IMG/VR virus record: IMGVR_UViG_3300022921_000002
Location: 62,001 to 126,000 of that record
Reading direction: 5' to 3' (one strand)
DNA: 64,000 bases
Part shown: in pieces, positions 4,599 through 62,776 of the stretch
Layout of the letters: each line of letters starts with the position of its first letter
Numbering within the stretch: position 1 is the stretch's first letter
Notes under the pieces: generated by a model
What the model was told of the DNA's origin: nothing
The model's input: only the letters and a program-made list of their open reading frames with translations
The model's database searches: none
Position numbers and translations under genes: made by a program

Positions 4599-5366
4599 AT
4601 GTCTTTTAACATATCAAAATTTAAATCAAATATGGACCGTTACGGTGGACCTGCTCATACCTCATTATTTGAAGTTCAAATCATACCACCTGGTGTTAGA
4701 ATTGAATCAGGATTAACACCAAGAGAACTTACATTCTTTTGTAAAACTGCCGCGGTACCAGGTTTAACTGTAAGAACAGAAACACTTGAACAGATTGGCC
4801 AATTGCCAAAACAGTTTCCCGTAGGAATGGATAACCAACAATTTAATACAATCTTTATGCTTGACTCCGACCATGCTGTTGTGAGTTATTTCCATTCATG
4901 GATACAGTCAGTTGTAAATTACGGTTCAAAAGGTGGAAGCTTTGCCGAGGTTGATGGGCAACTGCCGTATGAGGTGGGATACAAAGATGAGTATTCATGC
5001 CGAATGATTATCAAATATTATTCAACACGTGGCAAAATTGAAACTTATTATGAAACAATTCTTGACGGATGTTATCCAACAATCATTGGTGATATTGATT
5101 TGGCGTGGGAAAACAATGACAGCTTTGGCACATTACCTGTTGCGTTTGCATACGATCGCATTGCATTTAGTGGAGAAAAGGTTGGTTTGGTTGGAACACT
5201 TGAACGGTTTGGACGAGGTGCAGGATTGTTATCATTACTCGAATCAGTAGGAAGCATTGGTCAAACAATTCAACAAGGTTTAAGACCTGTTGGTATTCAA
5301 GATGCAATTAATAAGTTTACTAAAGTAAGAAGCGATTTCGATAATATATCAAAAATATTTAGATAA
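4599..5366 (+). CDS. gp54: Baseplate-tail tube initiator gp54 (gp19 family)
   Basis: MSFNISKFKS...GGPAHTSLFEV, FCKTAAVPG, YPTIIGDIDLAW, LPVAFAY. Confidence 0.75.
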   Translation: MSFNISKFKSNMDRYGGPAHTSLFEVQIIPPGVRIESGLTPRELTFFCKTAAVPGLTVRTETLEQIGQLPKQFPVGMDNQQFNTIFMLDSDHAVVSYFHSWIQSVVNYGSKGGSFAEVDGQLPYEVGYKDEYSCRMIIKYYSTRGKIETYYETILDGCYPTIIGDIDLAWENNDSFGTLPVAFAYDRIAFSGEKVGLVGTLERFGRGAGLLSLLESVGSIGQTIQQGLRPVGIQDAINKFTKVRSDFDNISKIFR

Positions 5367-5383
5367 TAAGAGAGAGATAAATT

Positions 5384-6085
5384 ATGACACTACCAAAAAT
5401 TGATTTGCCGATTTATGAGATGGAATTGCCATCAACCGGTGAAACTATCAAGTACCGTCCCTTCACGGTTAAAGAAGAAAAGATTCTATTAGTTGCTCAA
5501 GCATCTAAAGATAGTACACAAGAAATGGTTGCATCAAAGCAAATTGTAAATAACTGTTTGATTGACTATGATGTTAATAAATTAGCAATGTTTGATCTTG
5601 AGCTTATTCTATTAACATTGAGATCAAAATCCGTTGATAACTTAATTGAAATGCAGATCACTGATCCTGAGACAGAAGAAACTGTTGATATTTCAATTGA
5701 TTTAATGGACACTGAAATTATTAAAAATGATAAGCATACTAACAAAGTTAGGATCAATGAAGATTACACATTAATTTTAAAGTATCCTTCGATTGATGAG
5801 TATATTAAGATTACTGAAATGGACGAAGAGGATCCATTGGTATCATATCAAATTATGGTTTCCTGTTTGGATAAAGTTGCATCGGAAGATGAAGTTTATG
5901 AGTTTTCAAAGTATTCACAAAAAGAAATAGATCAATTCATGGAAGATGTGACAACCCCGGTCGTTGACGGTATTAGACTATTTTTTGAAACAATGCCAAA
6001 AATAAGACACACTAAAACATACAAGAATAAAAACGGTGACACTAAAAACTTTGTAATAGAAGGAATGCGAAGTTTTTTTACATAA
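5384..6085 (+). CDS. gp26: Baseplate hub assembly protein gp26-like
   Basis: MTLPKIDLPIYEMELPSTGETIKYRPFTVKEEKILL, LRSKSV, FFETMPK motifs. Confidence 0.88.
   Translation: MTLPKIDLPIYEMELPSTGETIKYRPFTVKEEKILLVAQASKDSTQEMVASKQIVNNCLIDYDVNKLAMFDLELILLTLRSKSVDNLIEMQITDPETEETVDISIDLMDTEIIKNDKHTNKVRINEDYTLILKYPSIDEYIKITEMDEEDPLVSYQIMVSCLDKVASEDEVYEFSKYSQKEIDQFMEDVTTPVVDGIRLFFETMPKIRHTKTYKNKNGDTKNFVIEGMRSFFT
6073..6079 (+). other. Candidate -1 ribosomal slippery site T TTT TTT linking gp26 to the gp51 frame
   Basis: AGT TTT TTT ACA TAA; the -1 frame TTT TTT TAC ATA ATG TTG is open into gp51; SD-like AAGGA at 6060-6064. Confidence 0.5.
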
Positions 6086-6249
6086 TGTTGTGCCATTCAT
6101 CACTGAGCGAATATTACCAAACGATGTTTGCTCTGGTACAACATCATAAGTATTCTATATCAGATATTGAAAGTTTGGTACCGTATGAAAAAGAATTATA
6201 TTTTACAATGTTAATTGAGTTCATGGAAAAGCAAAACGAGAATAGGTAA
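6085..6249 (+). CDS. gp51: Baseplate hub assembly catalyst gp51-like (54 aa)
   Basis: Manual translation MLCHSSLSEYYQTMFALVQHHKYSISDIESLVPYEKELYFTMLIEFMEKQNENR; TAATG overlap; below the ORF-track cutoff. Confidence 0.85.
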   Translation: MLCHSSLSEYYQTMFALVQHHKYSISDIESLVPYEKELYFTMLIEFMEKQNENR

Positions 6250-6254
6250 GAAAC

Positions 6255-8381
6255 ATGGCTAGAGAATATTCCAAAGATACAGAAGCAATCATTCAAAGGC
6301 TTAGGGATGAAGGTGACCTGATCCGTAATAGTGGAACAAATTCATTAAAATCAGTCAGTTCAAAACTCGACAAGTTTGGTGATGTTTTCAAATCAATTAA
6401 CAATGGAATACAAGCTCAAAGCGTAATGCTAAAGCAAGCACAAGGTATTGCGGAAGAACAATACGAGTACACAAAAAGACAACAGGAATTTGATGATTTA
6501 AAATCAGAAAAGCTTTCTGATGATACTCGTAAGAATGCCGAAGCCCGTGACGCAAAATTAATTGACGGTGTTACAAAAGCATTTAACTTAGGTAACCTTA
6601 CCAAATTACTTGCAGGTGGTGCAGGACTTGCTGCCGCAGGCCTTATAGGTAAAGGGTTTATGGATGAAAGATTTCCTAATGCATTTGACGGTATCAAAGA
6701 TACAGTAGCGGACTTGCGAGGAACTATTGACGGTATGAACCAGGCAGCCGCTGAATTAACACGAACCGTTAATGAAATAAAAACAGATATTCAAAAATTT
6801 AAAGATGCTGTACCATGGGAAGCCCTTGCGATCACACTTGCAGGACTTGCCCTTCTTCCATCAAGAGCAGGTCGGTTTGGCTTTGGTCTTGCCGCAGGTG
6901 CTGCTACTGGTGCATATAAAGTATTTAAGGGTGCAAGGCAAGGTGATGCTGGTTTAGCACAAGCGAAGGCAATTAAAGAAGCACAAGAGCGAGCAGCGAA
7001 AGAAGCAGCAGAAGCAGCGGCAAAAGAAGCAGCAGAAGTTGCAGCAAAGCAAGCAGCGGAAGCGGCGGCTAAGAAAGCAGCTCAAACTGCTGCATCTGAT
7101 GATAAGTTAATTGCTATCGCGGCGGAGCAGGCAGCAAAAGTTGCAAGTGAAGAAGCAGCAGAAGCAGCGGCAAAACGTACGGCGGCAATCTCAGCATCAG
7201 TCGCATTGCAACAAGCAGCATATGCTGATGCCGCTGGTCCTAATAGATATAGAATTCAACCACCGTCATTACCTCACCCTGGCAAAATGTTTACAGCACC
7301 GGGTCAAATGCCCGCGCCTAATATTAATATTACAGAAACACCTTCTGGTTTTATTTATCAAGATATGGATAATAATAATAGGTTTATGCCAAGGGATGTG
7401 GCGCAACAACGATTATCAGCTGCAGGATTTGGACCTGACGGTTTACCAAATTATGGTAAGGCGCCTCGACAACCACGTGTCGGCCCAAGGGGTGGGGATG
7501 CTGGTTTAGCAGAGGCACGAAGAATGTTGCAAGTTGGAGAAAAGCAGGGTGCAGAACTTTTAGCAAATGCTGACCGAGGTTTGATGAAAAAAATGGTAGC
7601 ATCTGAAACCACTAAAATCGCGGTAAAATGGATTCCCGCTGTTGGTGCAGTTATAGGTCTTGGGTTTGTAGCATATAGTCTTATAATAGGAGATTATACA
7701 ACCGCCGGTTTAGAATCAGTCGGTGTGGCAATGCCTAGTATTACTGGTATTGCTGCTGATATCGCCGCAGCTACTACTTCAATATTTTTCCATGTTGGAG
7801 GAGTAGGTCCTTATAACCAATTCAACCCAGCACACCGTGCACTGTATATGGAAATTGCTGCGATGTTACGAGATTCAGTTGATAAGTATATGGAAGATAA
7901 AGCAAGGGCAAGAGCAGAACGAGCAGCACAACCTTCCCAATGGGAACTCTTAGCAAGAGAAGCAGAAATTAAAGGTGGCAATGCTCGTATTGCAAGTCAA
8001 GCAACTTATTATGAAAAAAATGAAAGTGGAGGATTTTTGGGATTGCGCCGTTATTCAGTATTTAATGCTGCAGGACAATTTGTTCGTTATTCACGTACAA
8101 AACCTGAAGGTACTACATCTATGGATGGTTTCCGTATTAATCAAGCAAGGAATACTAGTTACCCATCAGCACAGCGCCAAATGGCACGAGCACAAATGGT
8201 TGCAGCAGGTGCAATAGGCACAGGCGGACAATATAACATCCATATGGGTGATACCGTTAACGCCCCAATGAATTATACTGAAGGTTCTAAGTCACAGGCA
8301 AATGTTAGAATGAACGGTACAAGTCTGCACGGCGGTGCTACCGATGATCCGTTTAATAATTTGCCACCAGGTATTAACTAA
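6255..8381 (+). CDS. Tape-measure/baseplate hub-like protein (gp29 position)
   Basis: 708 aa, helical and Ala-rich, directly after gp26/gp51; hydrophobic Gly/Ala segments. Confidence 0.55.
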   Translation: MAREYSKDTEAIIQRLRDEGDLIRNSGTNSLKSVSSKLDKFGDVFKSINNGIQAQSVMLKQAQGIAEEQYEYTKRQQEFDDLKSEKLSDDTRKNAEARDAKLIDGVTKAFNLGNLTKLLAGGAGLAAAGLIGKGFMDERFPNAFDGIKDTVADLRGTIDGMNQAAAELTRTVNEIKTDIQKFKDAVPWEALAITLAGLALLPSRAGRFGFGLAAGAATGAYKVFKGARQGDAGLAQAKAIKEAQERAAKEAAEAAAKEAAEVAAKQAAEAAAKKAAQTAASDDKLIAIAAEQAAKVASEEAAEAAAKRTAAISASVALQQAAYADAAGPNRYRIQPPSLPHPGKMFTAPGQMPAPNINITETPSGFIYQDMDNNNRFMPRDVAQQRLSAAGFGPDGLPNYGKAPRQPRVGPRGGDAGLAEARRMLQVGEKQGAELLANADRGLMKKMVASETTKIAVKWIPAVGAVIGLGFVAYSLIIGDYTTAGLESVGVAMPSITGIAADIAAATTSIFFHVGGVGPYNQFNPAHRALYMEIAAMLRDSVDKYMEDKARARAERAAQPSQWELLAREAEIKGGNARIASQATYYEKNESGGFLGLRRYSVFNAAGQFVRYSRTKPEGTTSMDGFRINQARNTSYPSAQRQMARAQMVAAGAIGTGGQYNIHMGDTVNAPMNYTEGSKSQANVRMNGTSLHGGATDDPFNNLPPGIN
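6993..7177 (+). repeat. Imperfect coding repeats encoding (A)AKEAAEAA-type Ala/Lys/Glu helix
   Basis: gcagcgaaagaagcagcagaagcagcggcaaaagaagcagcagaa... translating to AAKEAAEAAAKEAAEVAAKQAAEAAAKKAA. Confidence 0.75.
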
Positions 8382-61436: not shown

Positions 61437-62776
61437 TATGCCACCTCTTTAAGATCAAGCTCAAATTGTTTCTTTGCAGTTGTATTGTTCCAATACCGCA
61501 AATCAGTTTCAGCTTCTTTGATTTCCTTGGCAAGCTTTTGTACCATTTCATCAGTTAGGCTCATAATGTTAATTGCGAGTAACTTATCAGCATCTTCTGG
61601 TAATGCTGAGGTGACATTAAGGATTTGCTCGGCGACATCTTTTTTCTTGCGGTTCTTGAATACAATTTTATCATCAAGTACTGCTTGGATGAATTCCATT
61701 TTAACACGTAACCAACGTGCTAATTCGATTGCTTCTTGTTTACGCAATTCAATACGAGCATTGAGAATACCCAAACGGTAATCACAAAAATCTTTAATGA
61801 GATCAAGTTCATTTTTGTACTCACGGAGTTTACCATTAAAATCAATAACAGTAATATTTTCGGTGAGTGGCTTTGATAATTTGAACTTACGATATATTTT
61901 ATCGTTATCCCAATCTGAACTACCTTTTTGTTTTAATTTAACATCAAAACGAAAACCAGTTTTATCACATAAATCTTCATATGATACAATGTCACCATCT
62001 TCCTCAAGTTTATCGAGAACCTTAACGTAACCTTCACGGTCAAAACCGTATGGTACTTCAGTGATTGTCATTGTTGTTTTGGTTGGTTTACTGAAAACAC
62101 CATTAACAGAATACTTATCTTCGATAGAATCATATGTAACTGTACCATTGAAATCAGGAAAGGACACTGGAAGTCTTCTCGATATGTTACCACTCGACAA
62201 GTATTCATCGCAAGCACGAGAGAGATCGTTTTTTGATCGCGGAAGAATGTTTGTTGCGAAACCAGTTGCAATTCCTTTAGTTCCATTTGCCAATACCAAA
62301 GGAATAACTGGCAGGTAGAATGCTGGCGGCTCATGCTCAGGATCATTATGTTCAGGTGACAATTCCAAATCTTTGATATATGTTTTGAAATTTTCATGGA
62401 CACGAGTATATACATAACGTGCCGCACCAGGTTCTTGAACAAGTCGAGTACCAAATGACCCACGGCCTTCAACTAAACAAATATTGTTATTCCATGTTGC
62501 TGCCATCAATTGACCGGCACCTGCCGCTGATGTTTCACCGTGGTTGTAGCCGTAATCAGAAATGATACCAGCAACAGCAGATACCTTTTTGAAATCTGAT
62601 TTAGAGTTTAGCAATGAGGAGTACAAATAAAACCGTTGTACTGGTTTCAACCCATCAATCATATTTGGGATTGCTCTCGACTCAACCGTATACATTGCAA
62701 ATGATAACCATTCGTTTTTAGCAACGGCGCTAATTGGGTATTGGTGTTGATCTTCAACAAAATCTAAAACGCTCAT
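61436..62776 (-). CDS. gp52: DNA topoisomerase II subunit gp52 (GyrA/ParC-like)
   Basis: RAIPNMIDGLKPVQR, YNHGETS, GAARYVY (catalytic Tyr), GIATGFAT. Confidence 0.96.
   Translation of the reverse strand: MSVLDFVEDQHQYPISAVAKNEWLSFAMYTVESRAIPNMIDGLKPVQRFYLYSSLLNSKSDFKKVSAVAGIISDYGYNHGETSAAGAGQLMAATWNNNICLVEGRGSFGTRLVQEPGAARYVYTRVHENFKTYIKDLELSPEHNDPEHEPPAFYLPVIPLVLANGTKGIATGFATNILPRSKNDLSRACDEYLSSGNISRRLPVSFPDFNGTVTYDSIEDKYSVNGVFSKPTKTTMTITEVPYGFDREGYVKVLDKLEEDGDIVSYEDLCDKTGFRFDVKLKQKGSSDWDNDKIYRKFKLSKPLTENITVIDFNGKLREYKNELDLIKDFCDYRLGILNARIELRKQEAIELARWLRVKMEFIQAVLDDKIVFKNRKKKDVAEQILNVTSALPEDADKLLAINIMSLTDEMVQKLAKEIKEAETDLRYWNNTTAKKQFELDLKEVA

Follow-up and report, generated by a model that had tools for sequence, protein, structure and literature searches.

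How could a T4-like phage make gp51, a hub assembly chaperone that T4 encodes in one continuous gene, from a gp51-like open reading frame (ORF) of only 54 amino acids (aa)? The question is raised by a 64,000-nucleotide (nt) stretch of IMG/VR virus record IMGVR_UViG_3300022921_000002 (positions 62,001 to 126,000; hereafter the window, with coordinates counted from its first letter), in which this small ORF overlaps the stop codon of a gp26-like gene in the −1 frame. An initial annotation, made from the sequence alone, had proposed that ribosomes slip back at a run of seven T just ahead of that stop and so fuse the two reading frames. We find that the run forms an in-phase slippery heptamer conserved at nearly all homologous loci, that the peptide behind it is conserved right up to the heptamer, and that the predicted fusion is colinear with T4 gp51. 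On this evidence, a conserved −1 frameshift at the gp26/gp51 junction is likely to be real and functional.

Anatomy of the gp26/gp51 junction

The junction is made up of the following features:

5384–6085, + strand: gp26-like ORF in frame 0, 233 aa, the short chaperone form, ending ...EGMRSFFT before the stop
6073–6079, + strand: slippery heptamer T_TTT_TTT (AG[T TTT TTT]), at which two tRNA-Phe are proposed to make a tandem −1 slip
6083–6085, + strand: frame-0 stop codon TAA, one codon past the heptamer and overlapping the ATG at 6085–6087
6079–6249, + strand: −1 frame extension of 56 codons (YI plus the 54-aa gp51-like ORF) and its stop, the C-terminal tail of the predicted 288-aa long form

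The gp26-like ORF is a full-domain match to PF12322 (T4_baseplate; E value 1.4e-51, profile positions 2–218 of 219) and also matches phrog_150 (E value 7e-56, positions 5–233 of 282), while the 54-aa ORF (6085–6249) matches phrog_634, 'baseplate hub assembly catalyst' (E value 2e-20), so that both protein assignments of the initial annotation hold. The gp26-like ORF closes with the codons AGT TTT TTT ACA TAA, and the first T of the 7-T run (6073–6079) occupies a third codon position, which places the run in phase as an X_XXY_YYZ heptamer. The ATG of the −1 ORF overlaps the stop (TAATG). After a −1 slip the message would read TTT TTT TAC ATA ATG TTG TGC, for a predicted long form of 232 + 56 = 288 aa with the junction ...SFFYIMLCH.... 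The anatomy originally described, from the ORF ends, heptamer and −1 ORF to the 288-aa fusion and its SFFYIMLCH junction, is thus confirmed in the sequence. The same is true of the remark that the gp51-like ATG lacks a well-spaced Shine–Dalgarno (SD) element, as no purine-rich SD is found 5–12 nt before it in the window sequence. A promoter and terminator scan between the gp26-like and gp51-like ORFs gave nothing above chance.

The region from 5300 to 6700 is identical in independent Logan assemblies from three RNA libraries and one DNA library, and the agreement of these four assemblies shows that the T7 run is not an assembly error. Runs of at least six T are nevertheless frequent in the window (37% GC), with 68 on the + strand, so that a lone T7 is no proof and the case rests on in-phase conservation across homologues. 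A second T6 run within gp26 (5981–5986; CTA TTT TTT GAA, in the conserved FFETMP motif) is preceded by A and hence is not an X_XXY_YYZ heptamer; it is kept as a T-run in only 5 of 48 homologues.

A slippery heptamer conserved beyond coding needs

As an alignment of 13 sequences had no stretch conserved enough for an alignment-based locus search, we used single-protein scans from five lineages and gathered 191 loci with a gp26-like gene end. They derive from IMG/VR contigs and from cyanophage ACG-2014d, Pelagibacter phage HTVC008M, Methylophilales phage Melnitz, Vibrio phage phi-pp2 (KVP40 species), Aeromonas phages Aeh1 and Asswx_1, Sinorhizobium phage phiM7, Agrobacterium phage Atu_ph04, Pseudomonas phage Milchi and Stenotrophomonas phage Moby. 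Among isolate genomes, roughly 660 contain a gp26-like gene. An in-phase T_TTT_TTN lies 0, 3 or 6 nt ahead of the gp26 stop in 189 of the 191 loci, as TTTTTTC (114), TTTTTTT (65) or TTTTTTA (10), and the −1 phase is invariant; the comparison of junctions through which the initial annotation meant its proposal to be checked therefore bears it out at the nucleotide level. The codon ahead of the run always ends in T whatever amino acid it specifies (AGT, GAT, AAT, ACT, GCT or TCT). Furthermore, the second codon of the heptamer is sometimes Leu TTA, so that it is the T-run rather than the FF dipeptide that is conserved.

To put these counts in proportion, we computed the expectation from each lineage's own codon usage and amino acids, which amounts to ~0.3–0.4 per lineage. 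The heptamer is present in 57 of 58 clusters at 70% identity, where 21.5 would be expected; clustering at 50% identity leaves 22 lineages, of which 21 have it and 6.6 would be expected to (joint probability ~1e-13). As controls, the conserved FFxxMP motif ~30 codons upstream carries such a T-run in 5 of 48 lineages, and internal FF or FL dipeptides do so in 15 of 173 cases (9%). The gp26-like genes thus share with tail-assembly-chaperone genes a slippery heptamer near the 3′ end that is conserved beyond what coding demands. The heptamer also occurs beyond marine phages, in rhizobial, Agrobacterium, Pseudomonas, Stenotrophomonas and Aeromonas phages; the original suggestion that marine T4-like phages make a short and a long hub chaperone by recoding is accordingly supported by the conservation of the slip site and was too narrow in its scope.

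Since homopolymers are error-prone and T4 gp51 is continuous, the change of frame might be thought a sequencing error or a pseudogenizing mutation in an originally continuous gene. This reading is hardly credible in view of the same phase at 189 independent loci, which include Sanger-era isolates (KVP40, Aeh1, P-SSM4 class), of a frame-0 stop that always falls 0–6 nt past the T-run, and of the four concordant assemblies of the window's phage.

A more serious question is whether slippage would occur in transcription instead, with RNA polymerase adding one U in the T-run so that a subset of mRNAs encodes the same fusion. A single extra U would yield an identical product, polymerases are known to slip on homopolymeric runs of U or A, and E. 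coli genes are depleted of UUUUUUU in every frame (PMC4066793). The run is, however, fixed in the X_XXY_YYZ phase and preceded by a forced T at the wobble position, neither of which a polymerase would require. Moreover, 124 of the 189 loci have six T only (TTTTTTC or TTTTTTA), short for efficient polymerase slippage, which takes runs of about 9 or more. The contigs from the three RNA libraries show T7 as in DNA, a comparison in which contigs cannot reveal minority forms. Altogether, we judge polymerase slippage quite unlikely as the source of the fusion and retain ribosomal frameshifting as the preferred explanation.

Individual loci depart from the common pattern. In one IMG/VR contig (3300038844_000058; L073:1179-1901), the gp26-like ORF is without its ...LEGLxSFF end and most of the −1 tail, and frame 0 continues straight into the tail's charged C-terminus (...NVKKENERVEKENQRAKRQTRNK, then stop); this sole such case among the 191 loci is either an in-frame deletion variant or a mis-assembly. 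In Vibrio phages VAP7 (Ackermannviridae; L098:789-1717) and K476 (L100:702-1705), the gp26-like genes end GTT TTT CGC TAA TG and CTT TTT GCG TAA TG, respectively, with a T5 run only and no canonical heptamer, a −1 ORF whose own ATG overlaps the stop, and a diverged tail (...MAPWQV...). These two phages may use coupling or single-tRNA slippage instead.

The −1 frame tail and its missing start codons

A gp51-like peptide is found in the −1 frame at every locus, and the tail abuts the heptamer. In KVP40 the predicted junction peptide is ...EDFFRIMLGR.... From the heptamer onward the tails align without gaps as FF-x-[ILV]-x-L-S-H-x-s-L-x-x-Y-Y-x-x-N-F-A-L-M-Q-H-H-K-Y-S-L-T-E-I-E-N-M-I-P-W-E-R-x-I-Y.... 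This bears directly on the simplest alternative, translational coupling alone, in which ribosomes would stop at TAA and restart at the overlapping ATG to give gp26 and a free 54-aa gp51, with the T-run incidental. The overlap of the ATG at 6085 with the stop, the retention of ATG or GTG at this place by several close relatives, and the separate small gp51 annotated in GenBank records all favor such coupling. In 28 of 57 dereplicated lineages, however, the first ten tail codons contain no ATG, GTG or TTG, although the peptide is conserved from the heptamer onward; the next Met in these lineages comes ~20 codons in, within the conserved core. Even inside the window's own clade, some members (L020-L040, L046) have AGC or ACG where the window has ATG. 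A mechanism conserved across these phages cannot depend on a TAATG that roughly half of the lineages lack, and coupling would also leave the synonymous-site conservation of the heptamer unexplained. We consider coupling alone quite unlikely, though coupling may still contribute some free 54-aa peptide in the window's phage. The overlapping −1 ORF without a conserved initiation site is a further property that the locus shares with tail-assembly-chaperone genes, and it fits a −1 frameshift.

Existing annotations of the tail are uneven. The GenBank 'gp51' is begun at an internal Met in HTVC008M, Melnitz, Milchi and phi-pp2, which drops ~20 conserved residues (L095:1553-1690, L096:1550-1693, L097:1595-1738, L003:1549-1668), and gp51 is uncalled in the records of ACG-2014d, Atu_ph04, Aeh1 and Asswx_1 (loci without any gp51 annotation: L001, L002, L099, L102). 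No ribosomal-slippage join is present in any GenBank record examined. Sullivan et al. (2010) described cyanophage and vibriophage gp51 proteins of ~20% of normal length and a 'missing' gp51 in Aeh1, and left both unexplained (PMC3037559). A frameshift would account for both, as Aeh1 carries the heptamer as well as the gp51-like tail.

Colinearity of the predicted long form with T4 gp51

In T4, genes 26 (208 aa) and 51 (249 aa) are separate and divergently transcribed, and both products match PF12322. T4 gp51 consists of a PF12322 domain (residues 1–201) and, behind it, a tail to which both phrog_634 and the 54-aa ORF of the window match, in agreement with the initial annotation, which gave the full-length protein a PFTV-type N-terminus and a short C-terminal motif. 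Multiple alignments show five full-length gp51 proteins, that of T4 among them, to be colinear with the predicted fusion and to run without a gap across the junction, ...VDVF-KLLVNPDEIFTFYQ... in gp51 against ...RSFF-YIMLCHSSLSEYYQ... in the predicted long form; the alignment to T4 gp51 by which the fusion was to be judged is thus in its favor. A frameshifted product would thus be built like a protein that is known to be essential. Unlike T4 gene 51, the window holds no continuous ORF with both the PF12322 domain and the phrog_634 tail, which lie in different frames, and since only a −1 shift would give the gp51 architecture, the long form would stand in for gp51 functionally and not be the product of an ordinary gp51 gene. 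That the sole experimentally studied gp51, that of T4, has the fused architecture also speaks against coupling alone.

Phages with a separate gp51 show the reverse pattern at the end of gene 26. T4 gp26 has the C-terminus ...GLKEFFELL, in which FF is coded within GAG TTC TTT, with no slippery heptamer; T_TTT_TTN is found in gene 26 of none of the seven phages with a separate gp51, and among them the FF drifts to FV, FL or LL. Mixed TTC/TTT codons, which would have counted against a conserved slip site, occur only in phages with a separate full-length gp51, such as T4. In a maximum-likelihood tree, the separate gp26 proteins and the gp51 N-domains group together, opposite all frameshift-type genes, with branch support 100/98 and a root that is not established; this topology fits a duplication inside the T-even-like lineage.

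Gene arrangements in these phages vary. Escherichia phage RB16 (L204:710-3287) has gp54, full-length gp51, gp26 and gp25 in tandem on one strand, an order that looks like an intermediate between a single frameshifted gene and the divergent 26/51 pair of T4. In T4 itself, the stop of gene 26 overlaps the start of gene 25 (CTA TAA TG; L085:5797-5810, minus strand) in the same −1 phase as the gp26/gp51 junction elsewhere, without a slippery site. T4 gene 26 is essential and has an additional annotated internal product, 26′.

Candidate stimulators of the slip

Two elements flank the heptamer in the window:

6085–6144, + strand: bipartite stem-loop, with an outer helix (6085–6095/6134–6144) and an inner helix (6105–6115/6123–6133)
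6059–6064, + strand: SD-like sequence GAAGGA, 8 nt upstream of the heptamer, a candidate dnaX-type upstream stimulator

The initial annotation had noted a hairpin at 6105–6114/6124–6133 and held it to be too far downstream for a typical stimulator. The hairpin is real, and the objection falls away, as it forms the inner half of a larger stem-loop whose outer helix begins 5 nt past the heptamer. The complete structure has a folding energy of −25 kcal/mol (z −5.8), a stability that not one of 200 dinucleotide shuffles reaches. Within the window's clade (43–100% gp26 identity) the outer helix is 93% paired and includes three compensatory pairs (A-U/G-C, U-A/C-G and A-U/U-A), whereas helix partners slid by 1–3 columns as a control pair in at most 43% of cells. 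A covariation-supported stem-loop at the dnaX-type distance of 5–9 nt downstream is thus a property of the window's clade only. Other lineages often have a hairpin 0–6 nt downstream at differing positions, for which reason there is no family-wide consensus RNA model, and a family-wide downstream structure is unsupported in 60-nt windows, where z averages −0.98, compared with −0.62 in control windows (p 0.07).

Upstream of the heptamer, the AAGGA that the initial annotation had placed at 6060–6064, 8 nt away, is indeed found there, and a GGAG, GAGG, AGGA or AAGG lies 6–12 nt upstream (SD-like GARGGN) in 49 of 57 dereplicated lineages. The element coincides with a conserved (E/R/K)-G dipeptide, which is present also in the non-shifting gp26 of T4, so that a possible role as a stimulator cannot be told apart from coding constraint. 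The heptamer itself is of a kind well suited to slippage in E. coli, where U_UU.Y ranks second among A-site tetramers in its tendency to shift, H_HH.U_UU.Y heptamers, including U_UU.U_UU.Y, are among the most efficient for −1 frameshifting, and U_UU.U_UU.C is used by insertion sequence (IS) elements (PMC4066793).

Neighboring genes and predicted structure

The chaperone gene lies between two larger genes:

4599–5366, + strand: tail-tube-like gene (gp54/gp48-type 'baseplate-tail tube initiator'), directly upstream of the chaperone gene
6255–8381, + strand: gene for a 708-aa protein, a probable tape measure protein (gp29 analogue) by position, size and composition

The upstream product matches phrog_45 'tail tube' (E value 3e-29) and, weakly, PF23849 (Phage_TTP_2), and the syntenic genes of HTVC008M, phi-pp2, phiM7 and Milchi are annotated as tail tube or baseplate-tail tube initiator. 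The 708-aa protein has a coiled-coil region at its N-terminus and also contains a long repeat rich in Ala, Glu and Lys (KEAAEAAAKEAAE...), hydrophobic segments rich in Gly, and a middle part rich in Pro and Gly; an Atlas feature match to the PF25671 T4_Tape_measure cluster (0.90) serves as a lead only. Its counterpart in HTVC008M, which lies one small ORF further downstream there, is annotated as tape measure. It has no Pfam or PHROG match, its homologues (642–708 aa) are all 'hypothetical', and comparison with T4 gp29 gives a BLASTP E value of 0.027 over 56 aa and an hhalign probability of 0.4%, values that show no homology. Position, composition, the Atlas lead and the HTVC008M annotation together suggest that it is the tape measure; the label 'tape-measure-like' first given to this gene is upheld on position and composition, and not by homology to T4 gp29.

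For structure prediction, the gp26 domain and the −1 tail were analyzed as two separate pieces. The AlphaFold2 model of the gp26 domain (predicted local distance difference test, pLDDT, 90.5; predicted template modeling score, pTM, 0.82) matches tail-assembly-chaperone (TAC) folds over residues 1–93, namely the HK97 TAC and YqbN, so that the N-terminal domain shared by the short and predicted long forms has a predicted TAC fold. The tail is modeled as a small three-helix module (pLDDT 82). A profile search of Protein Data Bank sequences found no solved relative.

Proposed mechanism and its reach

From the anatomy of the junction, its conservation at the nucleotide level, the gap-free match to gp51, the covarying helix and the resemblance in fold, we infer that ribosomes do slip here, at some efficiency, and that the products act as chaperones. 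In the proposed mechanism, ribosomes translating the gp26-like gene would reach AG-U UUU UUU one codon short of the stop, where the majority would terminate and release the 233-aa short form. Because the stop lies directly after the heptamer, the short form ends ...FF(x). A fraction would slip back by 1 nt, with both tRNA-Phe re-pairing on UUU UUU, and would translate 56 further codons in the −1 frame to yield the 288-aa long form, that is, the gp26 domain with the gp51 tail. The slip is probably promoted in the window's clade by the stem-loop 5 nt downstream; the GAAGGA ahead of the heptamer and the stop next to it may contribute as well.

The short and long forms would then be counterparts of T4 gp26 and gp51 and, by fold and gene position, also of G and G-T of phage lambda, and both would presumably serve the tape measure and the central hub as assembly chaperones. 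The chaperone idea is itself not new. Acinetobacter phage Octan (MT409116; L201:889-3950) has gp26, gp51 and gp28 all labeled 'tape measure protein assembly chaperone', a label whose source paper we did not find in the searchable literature. Leiman et al. count gp26 and gp51 among the hub assembly chaperones and describe T4 gp51 as essential, needed for assembly and absent from the final particle (PMC3004832). The new element is the frameshift: in the searchable literature (open-access papers and bioRxiv preprints) we found no description of frameshifting or recoding at gp26/gp51, the matches being to unrelated uses of gp numbers, and an earlier report elsewhere is possible.

Frameshifting of this −1 kind very probably lets the window's phage, and almost all T4-like phages other than the T-evens, obtain two chaperones of different length, short and long, from a single gene. 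We lean, with less assurance, toward a broader reading, in which T4 gp26 and gp51 are the superfamily's G/G-T-type pair, the U_UUU_UUY frameshift is the ancestral and predominant route to it, and the T-evens replaced recoding by duplication; within this scenario, one copy would have been fixed in the shifted frame to become gp51 and a truncated copy would have become gp26.

If the frameshift is real, the annotation of gp51 needs correction in hundreds of phage genomes, where internal-Met starts and uncalled genes would give way to a ribosomal-slippage join. It would also provide a testable model, in which short and long chaperones act on tape measure and hub as do lambda G and G-T, and a natural experiment, namely the exchange of a fixed translational ratio for two separately expressed genes. 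A conserved frameshift would explain the truncated-looking gp51 of the window and connect the puzzling gp26/gp51 pair of T4 to the classic lambda chaperones. Should the equivalence to G/G-T hold, the tail-chaperone frameshift rule would extend to the one large group of long-tailed phages so far considered exempt from it, and should the duplication scenario hold, nature would have provided a clean example of recoding traded for paralogy. T4-like phages, among them the cyanomyoviruses and pelagimyophages sampled here, have been called ubiquitous and counted among the ocean's most abundant (PMC3037559), so that this would be among the most widespread recoding events in nature.

Comparison with known systems

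The E. coli dnaX −1 frameshift combines an upstream SD, a heptamer and a downstream hairpin, and the window has a similar tripartite layout, in which the heptamer is preceded at 8 nt by the SD-like GAAGGA and followed at 5 nt by a stable stem-loop. The two differ in that the dnaX shift leads to a shorter product whereas that in the window would lead to a longer one, and in that the SD-like element of the window is inseparable from coding constraint. IS3- and IS1-family transposases resemble the locus in the U_UU.U_UU.C heptamer class, a downstream structure and a −1 fusion protein (PMC4066793), while their proteins and biology are unrelated.

With T4 gp26 and gp51 the window's proteins share the Pfam and PHROG families, the short form corresponding to gp26 (...GLKEFF-ELL) and the predicted long form being colinear with gp51 including its tail. 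T4, however, has two separate, divergent paralogous genes and no heptamer in gene 26, in contrast to one gene and a predicted shift in the window.

The closest parallel is that of lambda G/G-T, for which Xu, Hendrix and Duda reportedly described in 2004 a −1 frameshift conserved among tail assembly chaperone genes. In both cases two overlapping ORFs follow a tail-tube-type gene just ahead of the tape-measure gene, in the window a probable one, and the lambda order V – G/G-T – H would be matched in the window by the tail-tube-like gene (phrog_45), the chaperone gene and the 708-aa gene, the presumed tape measure. Both have a slippery heptamer a few codons before the first ORF's stop, a −1 frame second ORF that lacks dependable start signals, and short and long forms, here predicted, with a common N-terminal domain. 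The chaperones are absent from the virion, which on the gp26/gp51 side is documented for T4 gp51 (PMC3004832). The N-domain model further resembles the TAC folds of the HK97 TAC and YqbN, with no sequence similarity detected between known TAC families and the window's gp26-like protein. On the other hand, the first ORF of the window is about twice as long (233 aa) and has an extra C-terminal alpha/beta domain, its extension is short (56 aa), and its heptamer is of the U_UUU_UUY type rather than the G_GGA_AAG of lambda. T4 genetics moreover ties the role of gp26 and gp51 to assembly of the central hub, and in the records examined the pair has never been annotated as a frameshift. In mechanism and role, the system belongs to the known class of tail-assembly-chaperone −1 frameshifts, to which the gp26/gp51 case is an addition.

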